Source: Ginkgo biloba
Lineage: Eukaryota; Plantae; Ginkgophyta
Assembly (NCBI GenBank): GCA_024626585.2
Contig: JANKJI020000004.1
Span: 80,897,730-80,917,546, forward strand
DNA length: 19,817 nt
Reading direction: 5' to 3'
Position 1 is the stretch's first letter. Each line of letters starts with the position of its first letter. Positions 973-19,344 of this stretch are shown in pieces. Both the position numbers and the translations under genes were made by a program. The notes under the pieces were generated by a model. The model ran no database searches. It was not told the origin of the DNA and worked only from the letters and a program-made list of their open reading frames with translations.

Positions 973-1161
973 TGCATATTTGAATTATAGAGTCATTTTG
1001 GTTAATGTGAAGGGTCACTATTGATCCTATATATGACAACATTATTTTGTTATTCATCACTTGACTTGGATGTAATAGATAGTTTTCTAATTATGAATTA
1101 TTTTTCCACATATATAACTGTGTATCTTCTATTCATTTATAATTTAATATGGTATTGGAGC
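973..1161 (+). mobile_element. Probable 3' part of a 5' LTR plus tRNA-iMet-like primer binding site (Copia-like), decayed
   Basis: TGGTATTGGAGC at 1150-1161 matches the canonical iMet PBS TGGTATCAGAGC at 10/12 positions. It follows TTAATA, a possible decayed ...AACA LTR end. A TATA-like CTATATAT lies near 1027, and TTTTCCACATATATAACTGTGT near 1102 resembles a Copia U5 motif. No gag was recognised downstream. Confidence 0.45.
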
Positions 1162-4100: not shown

Positions 4101-7100
4101 ATAAAGAGGAGGAAATATTAATAATAATTATTCACACTATATAGAGGGGATTATTTTGATTAAAATAGAAATAAAACCATATAGAATAGGAAAATTAAAA
4201 GTAAGGGGTAGAATAATCTGCTATCAGTGTTTACAAACAACTCATAATAGAGTGTGAATATATAGTAATGGGGAGGAGAAAAACTATAACAAAAACTTAT
4301 CAATTATGTACACCCTCTTCAGTATTTCTCCTAATTGCATAAACGAGGTCCTCTAGGTTTATGAGAATATTAGGACAATACTATTTCATAAATTTAATAA
4401 CTAATAGTGATTGACCTCTTTAGTGGACTAATATGCTACATTATTTCCTCTAATTCTCTCTAATAGTGATTGAATGGATATAAATATGAGATTATACTTA
4501 AGAATGGAAAATAATCCATACAAGTAATATACTCCAGTAGCACTCAAAGCATGAACCTGAAATATCACTTATATTTAATGGTAATATGACCCACTTAGAT
4601 CAATTATTTAGAAATGATAAANNNNNNNNNNNNNNNNNNNNNNNNNNNNNNNNNNNNNNNNNNNNNNNNNNNNNNNNNNNNNNNNNNNNNNNNNNNNNNN
4701 NNNNNNNNNNNNNNNNNNNNNACATAGGTTGGATTAAGGCTAAGGAAGCCCATTTTGAGCATATAAGGGAAAAAAAGATTCTTTATCAGACATAATTTAA
4801 ATTTTATCTTGATCTTATTTCAATATTCTTCTTCATTTATGGATTCATGGTTTTGTATGTAGGCATTCGTCACCTCAGACTTCCCCACAAAATGGTTCAT
4901 GTAATGGTCGCATTTTCCTTCAACAAGGAATTACTAATCTTCCATATTCACTCTACATATCATATGGGAGTAGAAGGACAATATCGTTGGGGTAATTATG
5001 GGGGTAATCCTAAGATGTACGCTGCTAGAGATACCATGCAGCAATAGCATTATGGTGGTGATGATGAAGTCAATGTCAATAGTATTTTAGGGATGTTGAT
5101 TTATCCACATGGTCTTCATGCTGTGGATTCCTTCATTTATTCCAAAAGGATGCAGAATGCATCATGAGAATGGGCACTCTGTGCTAAGGTGTAGTGACCA
5201 GAAAGCCAATATGAGAGCCAAGGCACCCTCCAACTTGTAATTCAACTAGTATCTTACCTCAATTACTCTCTTAACAATCATTCTCTATGTTAGAATGGTT
5301 CAACAACATGATCAGAATTTCCATTATGAGCCACTAGAACAAAAACTTGTAAGGAATGAAGGTGCCAAAGATATGGAAATGGGTAATAACAGGAGAATAG
5401 TTAAACAAAGACAATTCCCTTACAAAATAACCATACAAAATATTGAACGATGCAGTGGGTTATATTCGAAATGATATATTAACTTTATAGCAAACATACA
5501 AAATGGAAGTTATGTTAAACATTAATGGAGCGTTGCAGGTCTATACAAATTTCTTCGAGAAGTTCATAAAATAGGAGTCTTTGGAGTTAATTAAACTTAA
5601 CCATGGTTAATTGAAGGTTAACGAGGATGAATGGATACGATGAAATAAATAATGCCTCCTTTTTCCTATCGTAACAATAATTTTGCCTATGGAGTTCAAT
5701 GTAGAGAACTTCCCATATATTCTAAGATCTACATACCCATAGGGGGTACTCTTCCCCAGAAAGGTCACCTTGTTGACCCGTAAATGGAGCCATATCTATG
5801 GAAATAAATATCANNNNNNNNNNNNNNNNNNNNNNNNNNNNNNNNNNNNNNNNNNNNNNNNNNNNNNNNNNNNNNNNNNNNNNNNNNNNNNNNNNNNNNN
5901 NNNNNNNNNNNNNCACCAAAGAATCCAATGGGCTATTCCCCAATCTAGAATAGATTACAGAATATGAGATATTATTTCTATTCAAAATAAATTTATCATA
6001 ATAAGGTATAGGATAGCTATCTGGATTAAAAACTAAAGTTGATCAAATACTATCCCCATTAGAGCAATGGAAAAAAGAGGATTGATCATCATCCCCATTG
6101 AAGGAAAATTGATTTGCCTCAAAGGATATTTAATCATAATCNNNNNNNNNNNNNNNNNNNNNNNNNNNNNNATATCTCAACCTATATAATATGGGGAGAA
6201 ATAGAATTCCACCACATTGGGTCCCTCTCTACTAGATAGATAATGTTTCAATCAAGATATGGATTCTTTCGTAAATTTAAAATTCAAAGAAATTAAAAAT
6301 ATAGAGAAAGAAATTTTGAATATTTACGTTCGTAAAAAATATATGTTCAAAAAAATTCAAGAAAGGGAAAATATTGAATAATCTCCAACAACTCTAAGAA
6401 CAAACATCAAGTCAAAAGAGATCAGTTGAAGAAACAACCTAGGCGAGTTAGTTTATAGTTATATCTAACAACTTCTAACTATCATAGTAGAGAAAGTATA
6501 AATCAAATAAGGATGAAATAATAATGGTTATACTAAGAACTTATAGTGAGAAAATCACTCTATCTTTCCATTCCTTATTTTCCCCATATTTCCTCTATTT
6601 TTGTACTTTATTCATCCTATCTTTATTTGTAACCAGTTTCTTTGTTCTCATAGATCTTTGATCGAAAGGGAGTTGTCCTAGTTACTTGTGGTTTCTTTGA
6701 TTTCAAACTTTAAGTTATAACTATCAATATTGTACATTCACCTTTTTGGGCTTAAACCTTTCTAATACTTTCGGGTTTGTAAACATGTAATATTGAAACA
6801 TTTTCATTAATGGAATTATCCCTCTATAGTTTCATCTCTTTAATGTATTATTCCAAATATCCATTTGTATCAAAAAATTGAGTGTTATTGATCTTTAGCT
6901 GTAAATATTGATTTGATATATTTTTGTTGTTCATTTTGAGTATTGTTTCACATTGTAAATGAGTGCTACTATCAAAATTATACTGCATATAGTCAAATGT
7001 GGACATATACCAAGCATTACTGATATATTGTTAACTTGGAGGAATTAGGATTTGTGGGAATATATTTTCAAAAGTTATTCTCTTTTCCTTTTTTACTCCT

Positions 7101-7299
7101 TTGTTATTTATATGTATCAAATATTCATCNNNNNNNNNNNNNNNNNNNNNNNNNNNNNNNNNNNNNNNNNNNNNNNNNNNNNNNNNNNNNNNNNNNNNNN
7201 NNNNNNNNNNNNNNNNNNNNNNNNNNNNNAAAACGTGTTGTAGTTAAATCTATCCCCTAGTGTCTTTGTGTCTCCCAGTGAGAAATAGTGCACCAACAA

Positions 7300-8825
7300 A
7301 CCCCCGCGTGAACACTTAGTGCTTTGAAGGTTAATGATAGAATCTAGATTTTAGCGTATTCTTACCACATGGTATCTTTTCACTTCTCATCGCTTTATTA
7401 TTTTGTGTGAAAAAATGCCTTCACGGGGTGTTTGATGGAATTATGTGTAGGTGTAGTGCAGTTTTAACATGTGGTAGGCCATCGTTGTTGCCCCTCGCAA
7501 TCAAGAGAAGAGTAAAAAGACCTAATATGTAGTGATTTTGGGAGAAAATTCCCATGACCCTCAGATGTAATGAGATGCTAACACATGGCATAGATTGAGA
7601 GGCCCTCCCCTTGGCACAATTCCCAACTCTAAATATTAAACCAAGAAAAAATGGTCTACGATCCTAGGAGCCACAAGATCACATCACGTGGTATTTCTCG
7701 CACCTCCTAATCTCATGATGGCAACACACTCTATGTTAGCACAAGATTCAAAATGGATATGAGACTGAGCTCCTAGATTCATGACAAGTGGTGGCCCCAT
7801 CAGGGATCCTCCCCTCGAGGTCATATAAATGGTAGCAAGGTAAGGTGGAAAGGCCTTGTGAGGAGAAGCTCATACAATCTTTTCACATAGTAAGATATCA
7901 TGATCTCCCCCTCGTAGTAGTGAGGGACCTTAACAAAAAGAAAGTGGGGGGGCACAGGGCCTCATCCTTCAAGATAGCACCATGTGTCATCATCTTGGGG
8001 GACCCATTCCCCTCATGACTCAGTCATAATGGAAAGAGAAAGGATTAAACCCCAGCATAAGGTGGATCTTAAGGGGTGTGAGATGGCACCATGTAGCTCC
8101 ATCTCAAGGGCCCCTCCCCCCCCACGCCCAACTCAAATAGTAAGAAAAAAAAAGTAAATGAAGAAAATGGAACTACAAATATGAGGTGGCTTGAGGAAGC
8201 ACCACATGGCATAAACTCAGGACTCCTCCCCTCACGGATGCCCCAAGAACTTAAGGTCTCATAAAGGGTATTATAGTTTCCTTAGGGCACCCAAGATCAT
8301 ACCACATGGCACGATCTTGGGATGCCTCCCCTCATAGCTCAAATGCAACAAGGAAAAATAAAGGGGAAAGTCCCCCAAAGTGATACAAGACCCCCAAGAA
8401 CTAGAGATGATGCCATGCATCAGGATCTTAGGTCCTCTTAATAATAAAGTATAAACATGAGAGACGAATGTAGGAACAAAGAAATATAGGAGCTTGAGAG
8501 CTCACACGATCTCACCACATGGCATGATTGCACGCACTCTCGAGGAGGCACAAACAAGAGAAGTTTGGCCTAGTTTAGAATGGTGATTTTGCACAGGAAG
8601 AGGATATTAAAATCATTTCTATGGATTTAGAGGCTTCTTCTCTATAGATCCCTACTCATCACCCATCATGATGATCATGATATTAATACATTCAGCGTAG
8701 GCAACCAACAAAAAAATGAGAAATCACCCTGCACCTACTAGAAGTTACGAGGAACCATGGTTGTGCTAAATTTTGGTCACCTGGATCAAGGTGACCCATC
8801 CTTATGTACTCTTAATAAAATTAAT
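7300..8825. repeat. Long non-coding repeat, copy A, with 12 regularly spaced palindromic G-box-derived cores
   Basis: Colinear with 9738-11220 along its length (e.g. 7631 AAATATTAAACCAAGAA = 10027; 8557 AGAGAAGTTTGGCC.AGTTTAGAATGG = 10952). Core hexamers start at 7366, 7468, 7582, 7685, 7785, 7884, 7981, 8090, 8203, 8303, 8414 and 8516. Confidence 0.9.
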
Positions 8826-8883
8826 TGATGAACATTTTATTTCTTCCCTGATGTTTACATGTGATAATCAAGCAAGCTAGAGA

Positions 8884-8990
8884 TGTGGGGTTCCAAACAC
8901 TGAGCAGTGTTCTTCCATAAAATTTGTCATTTGTTGTTGCCCCAACATGCCCCACATTTGCTCATAATATGGGGACCCTCTTTGCTTTGG
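8884..8990 (-). mobile_element. Candidate polypurine tract plus very short or internally deleted LTR of a minus-strand gypsy element
   Basis: The minus strand reads AAAGAGGGTCCCCATATTATGAGCAAATGTGGGGCA|TGTTGGGG...GGAACCCCACA. This is a G-rich PPT-like tract (8960-8948) followed by a 64-bp segment with TG...CA ends and inverted termini (TGTTGGGG / CCCCACA). Confidence 0.35.
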
Positions 8991-9231
8991 ATAAATCTAA
9001 GGCATTAATGCAGGGATCCTATATGCATGTCAATGGTGTATCACCACCTGATCTCCAACTCAAACTTGTTCACAATATTTATTTTAGCCTCTATGCATAG
9101 TGTGCGGGAAAATCCTTGATAAATTAATGGTCAATGCGCCCTTGTGTAGTGTCCTTAAGTCATCCTTGTGTAAATCCCTAAGGCCGCTTAATGAACTGTG
9201 TAAATTCATGTTCCTTAGAGGAATAGAGAGG

Positions 9232-9637
9232 GCCCTGCATGCGAGCACTTAGTGATTGAAAATATAAAATTTTACTTCATTTGGTGTGCCATATGGCATT
9301 TTATCACCCTCCTATTTTCTCATTTATTTTTCTATGAAAAGTGATTTTCATCGAGTTTTTTGTCAAGTATCATGTGTGCAGGTATCAAGTGTAGCGCTAT
9401 TGTGACACGTGGTAGACCATCGTTAATTGAAAGGAAGAGAATAATATGGTAAAAAACTTGATGGGGAACTTTGCAAGCCTTGGGTTCAATGAGATGCTGA
9501 CATGTGGCATGATCTCTCACCTCCCAAGCTTGTGGAAACAAGGCACTTCAAGTTTGTACAAAGATCAAAGGGGTCACGGGCCTAGGTTCCCAGATGCATT
9601 CTAGGTGGTGTCCCCTCGGGGTTGTTCAGGAGGGACA
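9232..9637. repeat. Long non-coding repeat, copy B (partial, ends at gap; one internal unit deleted)
   Basis: 9245 GCACTTAGTGATTGAA matches 7312 ACACTTAGTGCTTTGAA. 9277-9500 matches 9738-9978. Cores are at 9290 (CATATG), 9406 (intact CACGTG) and 9501 (CATGTG). Confidence 0.85.
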
Positions 9638-9737
9638 NNNNNNNNNNNNNNNNNNNNNNNNNNNNNNNNNNNNNNNNNNNNNNNNNNNNNNNNNNNNNNN
9701 NNNNNNNNNNNNNNNNNNNNNNNNNNNNNNNNNNNNN

Positions 9738-11220
9738 TTCATTTGGTATGCCATGTGGTAATTTGTTACCCTCATGTTTCCTTGTTTATTTTCTTTATGA
9801 AAAGTTCTTTTCATTGAGTTACTTTTCAAGTATCATGTGTGAAGGTATTAGGTGCAGTATGATCGTGACGTGTGGTGAACCATCACTGTCTTGTCCCTCA
9901 CTAATTTAAAGAAAGAGAATAAAATAGTGAAAAACTTGATAGAAAACTCTACAAGACACAGATTCAATGAGATGATGACACATGGCAAGACTTAAAGGTT
10001 TTCCCCTTGTCACAATTCCTAAATCCAAATATTAAACCAAGAAGAAATGGTCTGTGAACCCAGGAGCCACAAGATCACACCATATGGCATAATCTCGTGC
10101 CTCCCAAGCTTGTGATGGCAAGGCGTTCCAAGTTAGCACAAGGTACAAAAGGGGTGAGATCCTAGGCTCCTAGATGTATAACAAGTGAAAAACCCCTCAA
10201 GGTTCCTTACCCTAGTGTCATTTAAATGGCAGCAAGGCAAGTTGAAAAGGGACCACAAGGAGAATCTCATATAATATCATCACATGATGATATTTCATGA
10301 TCTTCTCCTTGTAGCAATGAGGGACCTTAACAAAAGGAAAGGGGAGGGGCGTGAGGCCTCATCCTGTGAGATGATACCATATGTCATCATCATGGGCCCC
10401 CCACACCCCTCATGACTCAGTTATAGTGGAAAGAGAAAGAACCATTTTCCAGCACAAGGTGGATCTCTAGGGGCATGATATGGCACCATGTGGTACCATA
10501 TCGGGGGCCCCTCCCCTTGCACACCCGGATCAAACAGAAAGAAAATAAATAAAGGAAAAAAAAGGAACTATAGATATGACATGACTTGAGAAAGCACCAT
10601 ATGGCACAAACTTGAGGCTCCTCCCCCTGCGGAGGCCCCAAGCACTTAAGGTCTCACAAAGAGGATTACAGTGGTCTTAGGGCACTTGATATCACACCAT
10701 GTGGTGCAATCTTTGGGAACCTCCCCTCACAACTCAAATGAAACAAGGAAAAAGAAAGGGGAAAGTCCTTCAAAGTGACACGAGCCCCTCAAAAAATAGA
10801 GATGATGCCACGCATTAGGATCCCATGTCCTCCCTATAATAAATTGAAAAGGTGGAAAAGGAAGGTAGGAACAAAAAAATTTGTGAGCCTGAGAGCTTTC
10901 ACAATCTCACCACATGGCATGATCATATGCACTCTTAGGGAGGCATAAAGAAGAGAAGTTTGGCCCAGTTTAGAATGGAAATTTTATACGGGAAGAGGAG
11001 ATTGAAATATTTTTTATGGCTTTTGAGGCTTCTTCTTTACATATCCCTACTCAGGCGCCCATCATGATGATCATACTATTAATACATTTAGCACAAACAT
11101 ACCAACAAAGGGGAGAAGTGACCCTACACCTACCAAATGTTATGAGGAACTGTGGTTACACTAGCTTTTGGTCACCTAAAGTAGGGTTACCCATCTTTGT
11201 ATACTCCCAGTGAAATCAAT
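9738..11220. repeat. Long non-coding repeat, copy C, with 12 palindromic cores (bounded by gaps)
   Basis: Core hexamers start at 9752, 9869, 9979, 10081, 10182, 10281, 10378, 10487, 10598, 10698, 10809 and 10911. Each core and spacer corresponds positionally to one in copy A. Confidence 0.9.
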
Positions 11221-11630
11221 NNNNNNNNNNNNNNNNNNNNNNNNNNNNNNNNNNNNNNNNNNNNNNNNNNNNNNNNNNNNNNNNNNNNNNNNNNNNNNNN
11301 NNNNNNNNNNNNNNNNNNNNTTCATAGAATTCAAAGTGTTATAGGTCATGATGTGTAAATTTGTGTGTTTACACAGCACCACACTAACGTGCACTTCAGG
11401 AGCATGCATATACGCATTAAATCTCTACAACTGTGCGTAATCATGCATTGTACAGTTTCTCAGAGTCCATACAAAATCAAAACCTGAAACCTCATAGATA
11501 GCTAAGATTTACCATTCTATAGAGACAGTAATNNNNNNNNNNNNNNNNNNNNNNNNNNNNNNNNNNNNNNNNNNNNNNNNNNNNNNNNNNNNTTTGTCAA
11601 ATCCTCCAGCACTAAGTGGGTACATCAAAC

Positions 11631-12190
11631 AACCCCTATTTCCCATTACTTTGAGGTTGCCTACTTATCAATTCATGCACAAGTACATGATGGAAGGGGA
11701 TGAGGTGAAGGCCAAAATATTGGAAATTTTAGAGATAGAAAGGGATGGATCCCTCCAAGAATTCAGCAAACACTAAGAGCTGGTGAAAAGGTGGTTCGAT
11801 AGGAGAGCCAAAATTAAAGCCTTTAGGATTGAAGATTTGATTCTGCTATGGAATAAGTCTCATGAGAAGAAGGGGAAACATGTTAAATTTGATCCCCTCT
11901 AGATAGTCCCTTATCAGATATCATATATATTAGGGAGAAACACCTTTAGGGTGAAGGACCTATAAGGGAATGATCTGCCTTTACTAGTTAATGGCCAATA
12001 TCTAAAGCATTACTTCATAATTATGTTGTCCTCCACACTATCAAAATGATAAGGGAAGTAAGTAGGAGTAGGGTAAATTAGCTAAATTTATTTATTTATT
12101 TTATTATCTAGTTAGCTTCCTTATTTTCTTGTTGTAGTTTCAATACTCCCAAGTTATTAGGATAGTTTTGGTTTTCATAAAATAGTGTTT
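11631..12190 (+). mobile_element. Second fragment of the Tat/Ogre-like gypsy integrase C-terminus plus 3' non-coding start
   Basis: Colinear with 415-972. Translation: PLFPITLRLPTYQFMHKYMMEGDEVKAKILEILE...KH*ELVKRWFDRRAKIKAFRIEDLILLWNKSHEKKGKHVKFDPL*IVPYQ...NTFRVKDL*GNDLPLLVNGQYLKHYF. Confidence 0.9.
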
Positions 12191-13752
12191 TTCTTCCAAT
12201 AAGAGAGAGAATTATTTTGAAATAGAGCTCTAACCAATGAAGGTATCCAAATGGCTAGCGGTTAAAGGAAGCTCCTATGCTCTTTGGCGTTGAGATTCAA
12301 TTTTTAAGGGTGAGCTTATTTGTCATAGGGGAATGCTTTGGTTGAAGATGATATTCATTCCTGACATAGATTGAGGATCGACCTTGAAATTATGNNNNNN
12401 NNNNNNNNNNNNNNNNNNNNNNNNNNNNNNNNNNNNNNNNNNNNNNNNNNNNNNNNNNNNNNNNNNNNNNNNNNNNNNNNNNNNNNNNNNNNNNAAATAT
12501 TCATTCTACATACCATCCCACCTAGAATAGATTTATTATTTGGGAAATAGGGGAGTCACCCCATCATAATGGAGGAAGTTTATTCTTCCGACCATTATCA
12601 TCTTTATGATGCCACTTCACATGTAGTTTTGATTATTCATCATCAGCAATACACAAAATCCCTATCAATGCCACTTCATGGGTGATTCCATAAGAATATA
12701 ACATAATTAGGATACATTTCATGCTATTGCTCCCTCATCAACTTTCTAAGATGGATAGCATCCCTTACTCACTACATCTACCAATCTATAATAGAGTAGA
12801 AATTTAATCCTATAACAATTGTTCATTCTTTTATCCATATGCCACAATCATAATTTAAATAAAGAAACTTAAAGGAATAGAAACATACCTAAAGCTTATA
12901 GTTTTCAAATAAATAAGAATGTAAAATCCAATAGCTTGAGGGCATACTAATAATATCCTATTCAAATTTTTAACATTTTAAAGTTTAGCTAATGCCAATG
13001 GTCCAATACCAATGTTATATTGTAAGTAAACCTAGGAGATCACAATGTATCATTAAAGGGAAGTTCCTCACATCTAGAGAACTAGCAAGCCACTAGTTTT
13101 TCCCTTGGCATGGGTTATAGGGGTATAATAGGATATTTGATAAATATTGTGCACCATAAGCATTCATAAATGAATGGTTAGTTGGCTAATTCACATTACA
13201 ACATTTATGCTAATAATGCAAGCCCCCAACATCTATCTATCTTAATTGTGTATCTTGGAGAGTGCTACAAACTACGCTTATAAGATAGTAATTCACTTTT
13301 TCCACTTCTGAGCCATTCTAATCACACAATTACAACCATGGCTAGACATATAAAATTCTTAGAATCTCCTTTGATTCCTTCTTATTTGCATATAATCATA
13401 AGAGTACTCTCAAGAAAACAAAGAATATTATGATTGTAATTTTGATAAACAAAGACACTATAAGGTGAGTTTGTGAATATATCCCCTAATATTATGAGTA
13501 ATTACATGTTAGCCTCTTTGTACTTCTAAAGGGAGGAAGAATTTTGAAGGAGCTTAAAAGTTGTCATCTTTGTCAAGGGCTCTCCTTTGCACGTAAGGGG
13601 TTAAGCTAAATTCTTTCTTTGGAGGATCATATGCAGATAAATACATAAGTTTGCAACATATATTGCAAGAGGAGTAAAAAACAATTAAAACATCCATTTA
13701 AACAAAGTCAACAACAATTGGTTCATTAATCAAATTTTCATGACACTTGCAA

Positions 13753-14594: not shown

Positions 14595-15345
14595 AAACAT
14601 TAATTATATAAAAAGCTAAGAAAGCATGAATTTTAGGATATTGAGATACATTATTTAGGACATATTGTCTTGGATATAGGTATGGTGGTTGATCATGATA
14701 AATTAAATTAAATTATGGATTGGATTTAGTCTCAATTGATGATTAAGATAAGGATTTTCTATATGAGAAGTTTGTAAAATAGTTATAATAGATAGACCTA
14801 TGTACTTCTTACATAATAAGGACACAAATATTATCTAGATAGTAAAATGTGAGAAAATATTTCAAAAATAAAAAATATTATTGATATCCACCCTAATTAT
14901 ATTTCTTCAATATGGTGACAACCCCTTTTATGATATGCATAAATGTGAGTATGGATGGCATAGGGAAAGTCCTGATGAAAAATAAAAGGGTAGTGGGTTA
15001 TGAGAGTAGGAAACTAAATAGACATGCATTAAATTACCCTACCTATGATTCATATCTAGTAGTCTAGTAGGTCATTAGTTTAAGAAGTACATATGTATAA
15101 AGTAGAACCCTAAGTTTTTCTTAAATAGAGTGTCCAAGGTATCAAANNNNNNNNNNNNNNNNNNNNNNNNNNNNNNNTAATATATATCAATGCAAATGGA
15201 TGGAAATCCTCTATGATTTTGATATAGATATTAAATATTTAAAAGTGAAGTAAAATAAGATAGCTAATGCACTTAATTATCATAGGTGCATGCCATCCAT
15301 CACATTAGTGATGACTAATGTAGTGATCCTAATTAAATAGTGCTC
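14595..15345 (+). mobile_element. Degenerate Ty3/gypsy (Tekay/Del-like) RT C-terminus plus RNase H fragment
   Basis: Reads KH*LYKKLRKHEF*DIEIHYLGHIV...VDHDK...IMDW, then YESRKL (14999), NYPTYD (15032) and WMEILYDFDIDIKYLK...NKIANAL. Colinear with 15865-16605. Confidence 0.8.
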
Positions 15346-15394
15346 TCCTATAGATCCTAATGTATAAGGTGTGGTAGAGAGACATTTTCATCTC

Positions 15395-17385
15395 TAAGAG
15401 ATGATAGATAAGTGAACATTAGGCCACATGTATCTCCTTTGATACCCCCATTAATATTATTAAGCATAAGGTAGGTACCCTTCATCTATGTTGATTATAG
15501 GAAGTTAAATAAAGTAACTATTAGGAATAAGTATTATCTACCCTATATTGATAATGTATTTCAATAGTTAAGGGTATCCAAGTACTTTTAAAAATTAATT
15601 TGAGGTTAGTATTCCATAAGATTAGAATTAAATAAGAAGATATTTTCAAGACAACTTTCAAGACCAAGTATGGTCACTTTGATTTTATCTTCCTTTCTTT
15701 TAGACTAGTGAATTCCCTAGATACATCCATGTCATTAATGAATCGGATTTTTCAACAGTATTTAGATAAATTTATCATAATGTTCCTATATTATATATTA
15801 CCTTATTATAATATGAAGGAGGAATATATAGAGAATCTAAGAGTGGCTTTAGGTACTTTGAGGAAATATTAATTGTATATAAAGATAAGTAAGTGTTAAT
15901 TTTGGAAGACTGAGATACATTATTTACACCACATTATTTTGGAAACAGGTGTGGAATTTGATACTAATGAAGAAAAATAAATATTGGATTGGCAGCATCC
16001 TTGGTTAGTGGATTTTCCTAGGCCTAGCTAGCTATTACTGAAATTTTGTAAAATACTTATCTCTGCTTGTTATACCTATGTCCTCCTTATAAAATAAGGA
16101 GACAAAGTTTTTTGAGATAGATAAATATAATTAAATATTTAAAAAATTAAAAACATTATTAATAATTGCACCAATTTTATGCCTATATGGTTATAACCTA
16201 TTTATGGTGTTCACAAATGTGAGTATGAATGGAATAGGTTTAATCCTAATGTAGAATGCAAAGGTAGTAGATTATCATAATAGAAAACTCAAGATCTATA
16301 AATTAAATTACCTTACCCATGATTTAGAGTTAGTATATATAGTCTGTGCCCTTAAATCATGGCATCATTACCTATAAGGATCCTTATTTGAGCTTCATAC
16401 TAATTATGATTTTTTAAAATATATTTTTACTTAGCACCAAATTAATGTATAATAATGTATATCAATGGAACTCCTCTATGAATTTGACATAGATATTAAA
16501 TATTTGAAAGGAAAGGAAAATAAGGTAGATAATACACTTAGTTGATAGAGATATGTGATATCCATCATGTTGATGAATGAGGTAGAGGAATTAATTAAAT
16601 AATACTTTCAATGAAAGTTACAAATGGAATTCCATATGTCCTCTATTCATGTTATTTCTAAAGATGGGATCCTTCAAGTTTACAATAAATTACATGTACC
16701 AAAAGTAGGAAAGATCCCAAAAATATTATCTTATGAATCCCATCATGTCCCAACATCATAACATCCTAGTTGTCATAATATATACATGTAGCTATAGACT
16801 TATTACTTCTATCCCAAGATGAATAATATTGTGATTAAATATATAGTGTGATGCCTTCAATGCTAGAAAGTAAAATCACTTCATCAACACTAAATAAGAT
16901 TGTTTGAACCCTTAGAAATTTTAAAAAGGAAATGTAAACATACAATGATGGATTTTGTGATAGGACTATCTTGTAAGNNNNNNNNNNNNNNNNNNNNNNN
17001 NNNNNNNNNNNNNNNTACATTAATAAAATCAGTACACTTCATGGGATTTGATACTAAATTTTTGGTGGACAAGAGAATAGTTATCTTTATGAGGGAAATT
17101 ATGCATTTACACAAGTTTCTATAAAGCATTATATCAAATTGAGATTCTAATTTCACCTCTCAATTTTAGAAATGAATGTTTGGTGCATTCAAAATATAAT
17201 CAATATTCATCATAGCTTATCATCCNNNNNNNNNNNNNNNNNNNNNNNNNNNNNNNNNNNNCAAATTCTAAAGCAAATGCTAATAATGTGTGTGATATAT
17301 AAACTAAAATGTTGAGAGGATTATTTTCACTTGGTTGAATCTTCTTGCAACAATATAGAGCATACATCACTTGTAGTAGCCCTGG
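15395..17385 (+). mobile_element. Degenerate Ty3/gypsy chromovirus-type (Tekay/Del-like) pol: RT - RNase H - integrase (HHCC + core)
   Basis: RT: IRPHVSP, VDYRKLNKVTIRNKYYLP (15490), EDIFKTTFKTKYGHFDF, MNRIFQQYLDKFIIMFLYYI (catalytic DD changed to YY within 15783-15794). RNase H: NYLTHDLEL...ALKSWHHYL (16306), GKENKVDNTLS. Zn finger H..H..CLQC (16741-16863). Integrase: PLEI...MDFVIGL, IKSVHF, EIMHLH, DSNFTSQF, AYHP. The RT-RH-IN order is diagnostic of gypsy. Many stops and frameshifts. Confidence 0.92.
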
Positions 17386-17765
17386 GAGGATTGCCTACTT
17401 AATTAAATTAAATTATGATGGTCTTTTTTAATAATAATTTTAAAAGAATTATCATAATTAAAAATATAAAGGATTATAAAATATAAAGAAATGGCAACAC
17501 CTTCTACCAAGAGGTATGAGGTGAATTTACCTCCCCTAATAGATTTATCCTTAAGAATAAGAATATATTGATTAATGATTGAATGAGAAGTATTTAGGCA
17601 TTTATATATTTAAAATATCAAACTTTCAAATATAAAGAGGTACCCCTTTATTATAATTATAATCTNNNNNNNNNNNNNNNNNNNNNNNNNNNNNNNNNNN
17701 NNNNNNNNNNNNNNNNNNNNNNNNNNNNNNNNNNNNNNNNNNNNNNNNNNNNNNNNNNNNNNNNN

Positions 17766-18990
17766 GGACCTGTTTGCCCACTTCAAGAGCTGAGAGACTG
17801 GCACATGCACTTACAGAACTGGCAAAGGTAAACTGGTTTGCCTTCATGCCTTCATGATGCATTTGTATGAAGAATTGAAGAGCCTCTTTGTCTTGCCCAT
17901 TCTGCACATATCCTGATAGCATTGCAGTCCAGGAAACTACATTCCGCTCAGGTATTTTATCAAACCATTGCCTTGCCTCCTTTGTGCATCCAAATTTGGA
18001 ATACATGTCAACAAGAGCAGTACCAACAGAAACATCTAATTCGAACCCAGATCTGATGATGTTGGCATGGACCTGCCTGCCCTCTCTCATAGCTGATAGG
18101 TTGCCACATGCTCTGAGAACACTGGAAAGAGTATAATGGTTCGGCTTCACGTCTGACTGTTGCATTTGAAGAAAGAGTTCTAGAGCCAAGTCGCAATATC
18201 CATTCTGCACATACCCTGAAATCATAGTAGTCCATAATACCAGATCCAGTTTAGGTATTCTGTCAAACAACCGACTTGCATCTTCTATGCTCCCACATTT
18301 AGCATATGTATCAACGAGAACACTCTCTACCATTGTATTGGTATCATATCGAGTTCTGGTAATATGGGCATGTACTTGCTTTCCTAGATCCAAATCTCTC
18401 AAGATCGCACAAGCCCTGAGAACATTTACAAAGGTGAACTGGTTGGGCTTGATGCCTGCCTGTTGCATCTGGCGAAAGAGTTTCAGAGCTTCCTGGCCAC
18501 AACCATTCTGGACATATCCTGAAATTGCAGCAGTCCACAAGACCACGTCTATTCGAGGCATGCTAACAAATACCTTGTGGGCGTCCTCCATAATCCCGCA
18601 TTTGGCATACATGTCAACGAGGCTACTCCCCACAGAGACATCAGACTCCAGTCCAACCTCAATAACGAGGGCATGGATTTGCTTACCCCGTTGTAGAGCT
18701 GCTAATCTACCACATGCATTGAGAAGACTGGCAAAGGTGAACTGGTTCGGCTTCATGCCTGCTTGTTGCATTGAGCCTAAGAGTTCAACAGCGTTCTCTC
18801 CATGCGCATTTTGTGCATATCCTACAATCATCGCAGTCCACAAAACGGCATCTGGTTTTGGCGTTTCGTCAAATACTTGCCGAGCATCTTCTATGCTACC
18901 ACATTTGGCATACATATCAACAAGGACACTCCCCACAAAGATATTTGATTCAAAACCAGTTTTGACAATGAGCACATGAACAAGCTTGTC
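17766..18990 (-). CDS. PLS-class pentatricopeptide repeat (PPR) protein, open portion; 3' end (expected E/E+/DYW) lost in gap
   Basis: About 408 stop-free codons with four regular 101-aa S-P-L triplets (LVDMYAKCG.IEDA..VFD / WTAMI.GY.QNG...AL.LF.QMQQ.G.KPN / QFTF..VL.AC..L..L..GKQVH). The first in-frame ATG is at 18915. The frame runs into the 100-N gap at 17765. Confidence 0.9.
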
Positions 18991-19344
18991 TTATTCCAGA
19001 TCTGCTAGGCTAGGGCATGCTTGAAGAACACCAATGAAAGTGAATTGGTTTGGTTTCATGTGTACTTATTGCATTTGGTGAAAGACTTTTAGGGCTTCTT
19101 CAATATCACCATCTTGTGCATACCTTGCGATCATGAAAGTCCATGAGATGACATTTTGCTCATACATTTTGTCAAACACGTGATGCCCATCCTCAATTTG
19201 CCTTCATTTAACATACAGGTTGAGAAGGTTGTTCCACATAATGATATCTAGCTCAAATTATACTTTAAGGATGTGGGCATGGACCTATTTACCTTCTGTC
19301 ATTGCTCTAGTGTCAATACACCACTGTAACATACTGTAGAGATC
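18991..19344 (-). pseudogene. Decayed in-frame N-terminal PPR motifs (L-S-P-L) of the same gene
   Basis: Same frame: DLYSMLQWCIDTRAMTEGK*VHAHILKV*FELDIIMWNNLLNLYVK*RQIEDGHHVFDKMYEQNVISWTFMIARYAQDGDIEEALKVFHQMQ*VHMKPNQFTFIGVLQACPSLADLE*. Stops at 19285-87, 19258-60, 19204-06, 19066-68 and 18991-93, with no frameshift. Confidence 0.88.

Follow-up and report, generated by a model that had tools for sequence, protein, structure and literature searches.

The window analysed here is a stretch of 19,817 bp from Ginkgo biloba (assembly GCA_024626585.2, contig JANKJI020000004.1, with positions counted from the first letter of the stretch). It contains an old, non-coding repeat in two and a third copies arranged head to tail, each full copy being made up of twelve subunits of about 105 bp. 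A preliminary description of this DNA had proposed an array of palindromic cores and dissimilar spacers amplified as a larger unit, and this arrangement is real; to it we add a partial third copy, copy B. The parts of the array, with the best-kept cores, are as follows.

7341-8596, + strand: copy A, twelve subunits of ~105 bp, each with a ~28-bp palindromic core, a C-rich box and an A-rich spacer that cannot be aligned; core centres at 7368, 7470, 7584, 7687, 7787, 7888, 7983, 8092, 8205, 8305, 8415 and 8518
8597-8825, + strand: tail of copy A, non-periodic, homologous to 10992-11220
8826-9242, no strand assigned: linker between copies A and B, 417 bp, without a counterpart elsewhere in the window
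9243-9637, + strand: copy B, partial; cores at 9292, 9408 and 9503 and a degenerate core near 9604
9638-9737: assembly gap, written as 100 N, of true length zero
9738-10991, + strand: copy C, twelve subunits in the same order as in copy A and 77% identical to it; core centres at 9754, 9870, 9981, 10083, 10182, 10283, 10380, 10489, 10600, 10700, 10810 and 10913
10992-11220, + strand: tail of copy C, ending at the assembly gap 11221-11320
8291-8320: core A10, the best-kept core of copy A; 8-bp arms CCAAGATC and GATCTTGG around ATACCACATGGCAC, 11 of 14 pairs
10477-10502: core C8, the best-kept core of copy C; arms GATATGG and CCATATC around CACCATGTGGTA, 11 of 14 pairs
10255-10312: core C6, lying inside an exceptional 58-bp palindrome with 28-nt arms that are 86% complementary

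All twelve subunits run head to tail in a single orientation, sharing the core and a C-rich box (C-box) on one side of it which gives every subunit a polarity. The spacing between cores is 95-114 bp in copy A (mean 104.5, standard deviation 6.1) and 97-116 bp in copy C (mean 105.4), and the spacings of the two copies are correlated (r = 0.72). The twelve cores of copy A had been reported to recur in the same order in copy C, and they do. When each copy is taken together with its tail (A to 8825, C to 11220), 1415 positions can be aligned, of which 77% are identical; the differences include 218 transitions and 108 transversions, a ratio of 2.0, and from these counts the Kimura two-parameter model gives a divergence of ~0.28 substitutions per site. 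The tail of copy A carries a conserved TATTAATACATT, found ~165 bp past the last core in both A and C, together with the inverted repeat GGTCACCT...AGGTGACC.

Copy B matches copy C in two pieces, 9276-9512 corresponding to 9738-9990 (C subunits 1-3) and 9501-9623 to 10081-10204 (subunits 4-5). These matches overlap within the core itself, the core at 9503 being a fusion of subunits 3 and 4, which indicates that copy B lost exactly one subunit through recombination between cores. Further along, copy B ends abruptly and joins the start of copy C directly, and the sequences that precede A and B share only one 15-bp word.

The scaffold has 17 runs of N in the window, three of which border or cut the array, and mis-scaffolded or collapsed repeats might mimic a higher-order layout of this kind. 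We consider such an artefact very improbable given that Logan contigs from two independent studies agree with the stretch letter for letter, one of them bridging B and C, and that no gap interrupts 7230-9637, which takes in A, the linker and B. A 1667-nt read-derived contig (run X1, record 6) places its letters 1-1350 on 9738-11087 and its letters 1351-1667 on 9321-9637 with 0 differences; X1 is a publicly available DNA run from this species which may be the assembly's own sample, and the contig therefore provides read-level continuity rather than independent replication. Since it spans both flanks, 9637 directly abuts 9738, and because the gap has no length the offset from A to C is ~2295 bp and not 2395. 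The gaps at 7130-7229 and 11221-11320 are bridged by none of the listed contigs, which enter the first of them by 52-107 letters, and real sequence is missing there, possibly including further repeat units. In the DNA runs, words from the array and linker have a summed depth of 2-10 times that of single-copy sequence, which is ~75 (for the linker by itself the excess is several-fold), and variant letters at 8956, 9293, 11054 and 11057 occur on 5-7 separate contigs. Together, the raised depth and the variant letters indicate that there are more copies, either elsewhere in the genome or in unassembled parts of the cluster.

The block shared between subunits reads GAGAT, three variable bases, ACCAYRTGG(Y), three variable bases and ATCTC, forming a palindrome of ~28 bp. 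A C-rich box of the CCTCCCCTC type lies ~18-30 bp to the right of the core centre, on that side only, and is followed by an A-rich stretch; a C-rich motif had been described after most cores, and this holds in so far as it is strong in ~8 of the 12 subunits. Counting CCAYRTGG over the whole window provides a test of enrichment that is independent of the core placements chosen, and there are 12 occurrences compared with 1.13 expected from shuffles (maximum 4 in 200 shuffles), 11 of which fall inside the array. When the cores are made into a weight matrix, scores above ~10 are confined to 7368-10913. Across 27 core centres, a mean of 7.0 of 14 pairs are complementary against a background of 3.9 (standard deviation 1.7), and only about a third of the cores, those with at least 9 of 14 pairs, are clear palindromes. 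The three palindromes quoted in the preliminary description lie exactly at 8291-8320, 8080-8105 and 10477-10502. A longer palindrome reaching out to the G-rich and C-rich flanks was considered and rejected, as C6 alone shows one and the outer arms have a mean z of -0.19; a two-subunit or other higher-order pattern within the array was also rejected, there being no lag effect and similarity being independent of distance along the array.

The conservation of these parts differs greatly within a copy. Cores of different subunits align far above shuffled sequence (z 11-13) and their C-boxes weakly above it (z 3-4), whereas the spacers, making up the ~50 bp that are left in each subunit, do no better than shuffled sequence (z -0.6 and -0.3). 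Taking all of the sequence between palindromes, the mean local score is ~8 compared with ~7 when shuffled, and the few pairs that exceed the 99th percentile involve C-box or A-rich sequence. Spacers that aligned with one another as well as the cores do would have spoken against the architecture first described, and this is not what we see. Between copies the picture is different, as had also been described, with spacers 73-74% identical position by position. Palindromes (73.5% identity), C-boxes (72.8%) and spacers (72.6%) have diverged equally since A and C separated (Fisher p = 0.82), which implies that the cores enjoy no protection at this locus now, and a present function for the locus is not supported. 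The array is a tandem repeat of great age, of which one ~45-bp block per subunit has been retained.

Given that core and spacer are duplicated together, the contrast between them requires either selection on the block or conversion confined to it. If the latter, the array could be an ordinary old minisatellite or higher-order tandem repeat which never had a function, its palindromes being re-homogenised by short-tract gene conversion or template switching whilst the spacers drifted. The loss of a subunit from copy B by recombination exactly at a core is what such a process would give, and cores are not spared between A and C. However, conversion would also have had to preserve the one-sided C-rich box, and it must have ceased altogether once A and C had separated. 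The repeat has degenerated strongly, no array being reported by Tandem Repeats Finder (TRF) in 7300-11220, and a few spacer pairs do retain weak similarity, with BLAST returning two weak matches between subunits (7972-8119 with 8081-8231 at 62%, and 10466-10558 with 10675-10764 at 68%). Set against this, the difference between spacers at shuffle level and cores at z 11-13 is large for a neutral process, and both the count of 12 and the order of the subunits have stayed stable between copies. A minisatellite that was never functional therefore seems to us unlikely, and selection in a mobile ancestor is favoured over conversion as the reason for which the cores were retained. Nor does the array have the makeup of satellite DNA, in which homogenised monomers form long arrays, having only 12 monomers per copy, no array detected by TRF and spacers at shuffle level.

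What the cores originally contained can be judged from the differences between orthologous copies. The central hexamer is CACATG in A1, CATATG in B1 and CATGTG in C1; CACATG in A3 and CATGTG in B3; CACGTG in A4 and CATATG in C4; and CACATG in A10 and CATGTG in C10. Changes on opposite sides of the CpG in orthologous cores are to be expected if an ancestral CACGTG had a methylated CpG that decayed by C-to-T change independently in each copy, and a CACGTG centre, that is, a G-box CCACGTGG, is supported as the ancestral state on these grounds. An intact CACGTG is now found only in A4 and B2, with ACGTG in C2, and the remaining cores are one or two CpG transitions away from it. The ancestral core proposed in the preliminary description fares well at this centre; its longer form, GCGCCACGTGGCGC, does not, as the bases that separate the G-box from its GAGAT/ATCTC arms are variable and unpaired. 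CCACGTGG, or CACGTG, is the classical plant G-box and is bound by bZIP and bHLH dimers.

CpG is depleted throughout the array (observed/expected 0.19-0.28), with TpG and CpA in excess, which indicates methylation. Judged from their base composition and core sequences, the local copies are methylated, decaying fossils and appear not to be a working system. This bears upon the idea that the array was exapted as a host enhancer or insulator serving the DUF716 gene upstream and the pentatricopeptide repeat (PPR) gene downstream, both of which are listed below. Twelve former G-boxes ~2 kb downstream of the DUF716 gene might seem well placed for this, but CACGTG is left in only 2-3 of 27 cores, the CpG depletion points to methylation and the cores decay as fast as the spacers, making a host role scarcely credible.

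The palindromes could instead have acted as a multi-hairpin element, forming stem-loops in RNA or single-stranded DNA for packaging, dimerisation or strand transfer, or serving as hairpin templates that trigger small RNAs. Core palindromy is far above background, core C6 lies in its 58-bp palindrome, and copy C folds with a mean z of -1.6 on the + strand and -2.3 on the - strand compared with -0.6 to -0.9 in controls; there is also a precedent in the small-RNA proposal made for palindromes in Sirevirus long terminal repeats (LTRs) (PMC4728375). On the other hand, the + strand of copy A shows no stronger folding than that of controls, and where folding energies are modestly below those of shuffles they are similar on both strands, as palindromic DNA would give. 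The preliminary description had suggested a multi-hairpin RNA element, and compensation should have maintained pairing were this so. Pairing between arms is 62.7% compared with 61.0% in column shuffles (83 of 500 shuffles reach or exceed the observed value), and variable positions inside the arms pair in only ~41-44% of cells and are not kept complementary. The palindrome is thus, as far as the aligned cores tell, a property of the column consensus and not of compensation in each copy. A palindrome at the level of the consensus, with no covariation, would fit symmetric protein half-sites better than a selected hairpin. Searches of the array region found no Rfam family at the gathering score or at E < 0.3 and no tRNA, and a known RNA or a tRNA-derived unit was rejected on this basis; no RNA read matched the array in the 2% and 6% portions read of two RNA runs, which is a weak test. 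Taken together, these data make a hairpin function improbable. A coding repeat was also considered, ~105 bp being the length of a 35-residue PPR motif and a PPR gene lying nearby, and was rejected, as periods range over 95-116, no frame is open and reading-frame pieces of the array region have no match in Pfam.

Our preferred explanation, to which we give a probability of roughly 0.45, is that each copy is the fossil of a ~1.5-1.9 kb module whose ancestral role was that of a multimerised, G-box protein-binding enhancer of a mobile element. A ~105-bp unit would have been tandemly duplicated long ago to twelve subunits, after which selection in the ancestral, presumably mobile, repeat may have kept a ~45-bp block in every subunit whilst the rest of each subunit drifted beyond recognition. 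The block so kept would have comprised the palindrome GAGAT-n3-ACCACGTGGT-n3-ATCTC, with a perfect G-box at its centre, and the CCTCCCCTC box on one side. It may have served as a multimerised platform for dimeric G-box-binding bZIP or bHLH factors, and the module as an enhancer-type cis-region governing the transcription of a transposable element, located either in the U3 part of an LTR or in the non-coding region of a retroelement. Copies would then have been methylated after deposition and have decayed, such that all but two or three of the central CpG dinucleotides are now TpG or CpA. The anatomy of the array, the unequal retention of its parts among subunits, the loss of CpG, the equal divergence between copies and the closed gap are established directly, whereas the mobility of the carrier, the binding of proteins and the role as an enhancer are what we infer.

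Several points weigh against this explanation. The conservation of the outer GAGAT/ATCTC arms makes the site longer than the usual G-box, and the spacing varies by ±6 bp with no strict phasing. A helically phased enhancer had been put forward as a candidate role, and helical phasing of the cores is not significant (Rayleigh p ~0.10, spacing standard deviation 6 bp). Retention of the cores could in principle have come about through short-tract gene conversion at palindromes instead of selection. No pair of LTRs, primer-binding site (PBS), polypurine tract (PPT)/LTR border or set of terminal inverted repeats was found around the unit, no coding domain is attached to the array, and the nearest integrase fragments are not contiguous with it. 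The features of the surrounding sequence that bear upon this are listed here.

3-830, + strand: integrase fragment 1, with the rve core at 3-239 (E 4e-10) and a C-terminal part to ~830; Ty3/gypsy, decayed
4796-5044, + strand: exon of a DUF716/TMEM45-like host gene (E 2e-5, just under the Pfam cutoff)
5100-5237, + strand: exon of the same DUF716/TMEM45-like host gene (E 7.5e-12)
11594-12187, + strand: integrase fragment 2, downstream of the array
14897-15064: RNase H piece (RT_RNaseH), decayed Ty3/gypsy
17626-19300, - strand: PLS-type PPR gene (PPR families, E down to 8e-64)

The DUF716 and PPR genes place the array in a plant nuclear context. Integrase fragment 1 sits 6.4 kb upstream of the array with the DUF716 exons (4796-5237) in between, and the 900 bp that follow it contain no core. 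The C-terminal part of the integrase, with ~140 bp downstream of it, is duplicated (415-974 and 11631-12187, 81% identical, 11.2 kb apart), and homology between the duplicated segments stops abruptly on both sides. The tandem repeats that Ogre/Tat elements carry in their 3' non-coding region had been cited in the preliminary description. Given that a host gene separates the array from the first integrase fragment, that the second fragment lies downstream, and that no LTR pair, PBS or PPT border could be fixed, a placement of the array in such a region could not be established. Matches to a PBS for initiator tRNA-Met near the borders of the unit are at chance level (17 compared with 12.4 expected). 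Homology between the flanks (6172-7129, 11321-11532, 975-1726 and 12188-12394) and the tail or linker is likewise at shuffle level, and the window holds no copia domains. A scan of metagenomes for a two-core pattern returned 4 contigs, none of which resembles the window by BLAST or contains an array.

Some further observations concern this surrounding sequence and the scan. At 1150-1161 (+ strand), ~320 bp past integrase fragment 1, TGGTATTGGAGC is two mismatches from an initiator tRNA-Met PBS and may mark the start of another element. Next to integrase fragment 2, the interval 11450-11643 is a very high-copy short repeat: its word depth in two DNA runs is ~200 times that of single-copy sequence, and many contigs terminate at 11597 and at 11627-11629. 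A decayed reverse transcriptase/RNase H stretch is present as a tandem duplicate at 14595-15347 and 15864-16609 (+ strand, 65% identity). The PPR gene has an internal self-similarity of ~303 nt, and its 3' part is broken by an assembly gap (17666-17765). Two of the metagenome contigs, from one sample and selected by the pattern itself, have two ACCACGTGGT boxes flanking CCTCCCCTCCCC-type boxes (L001:3226-3315 and L003:4340-4435), and are probably unrelated to the array.

Amongst known systems, Tat/Ogre elements have tandem subrepeats in their non-coding regions, as short arrays downstream of gag-pol (PMC7004042; for the 3' non-coding region, Macas et al. 2009, as cited in PMC7004042), and in their complex arrays short arrays are interlaced, at a fixed spacing, with sequence of the element (Vondrak et al. 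2019, PMC7004042). The Ginkgo array is similarly composed of short head-to-tail runs of non-coding monomers of one family, the succession of A, linker and B/C resembles interlaced arrays, and the window also has gypsy integrase fragments on the strand of the array. Tat/Ogre monomers are, however, hypervariable in sequence, length and number yet fairly homogeneous within an array, whereas here the monomers are almost unalignable outside the ~45-bp block and their number does not vary between A and C, which share 12 ordered subunits; only B differs.

The nearest functional analogue comes from maize, where palindromes cluster in the cis-regulatory part of the LTRs of Sirevirus (Ty1/copia) elements (Bousios et al. 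2016, PMC4728375), although motif, size, number and carrier all differ. The Sirevirus palindrome is GC-rich and 17 bp long (CACCGGACtGTCCGGTG), is present in ~7 copies on average in four loci per LTR, and lies within the copia LTR upstream of the TATA box, with cis-regulation and hairpin formation as its proposed roles (PMC4728375). The likeness is in having several palindromes with conserved arms within otherwise fast-evolving non-coding sequence of a mobile element. Instead of the Sirevirus consensus, the core here is GAGAT-n3-ACCAYRTGG-n3-ATCTC, a ~28-bp G-box palindrome accompanied by a C-box and present in 12 copies at ~105 bp over 1.2 kb. As for an LTR setting with a TATA box, no LTR boundaries were found here, and a conserved TATTAATACATT follows the last core at ~165 bp in both copies. 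The inferred ancestral centre of every well-kept core, ACCACGTGGT/C, is a perfect palindromic G-box, but promoter G-boxes are single or few, in contrast to the 12 evenly spaced sites found here, and the present cores are mostly CACATG, CATGTG or CATATG.

The array had also been called CRISPR-like in form, eukaryotic and free of cas genes. It does have partly palindromic repeats at a regular spacing, separated by sequences that are unlike one another, but it is not a CRISPR member: it is plant nuclear DNA with no cas genes, degenerate repeats and a ~105-bp period, and its spacers are inherited from copy to copy in unchanged order rather than acquired. The likeness is formal only. The array is best filed among those cases in which cis-motifs are conserved within the tandem subrepeats of a mobile element's non-coding DNA.

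A further proposition, that an undescribed family of plant mobile elements has this module as the core of its cis-regulation and keeps in it exactly twelve evenly spaced G-box palindromes, each with a polar C-rich box, we regard as doubtful. Were it true, selection on the cores would have lasted long enough for the intervening DNA to be fully randomised, and a mobile 'G-box platform' of this kind could spread clusters of light-, hormone- or stress-responsive bZIP/bHLH sites or nucleate hairpin small RNAs. If young, unmethylated members exist, they would represent a natural case of one high-affinity transcription-factor site being carried by a mobile element in a long, ordered array, and such a family would help in studying how repeats spread regulatory motifs and how selection acting on a mobile element can retain short motifs whilst their surroundings change. 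The copies in this window are dead, and their value is as a dated record of the architecture and of the loss of G-boxes driven by methylation.

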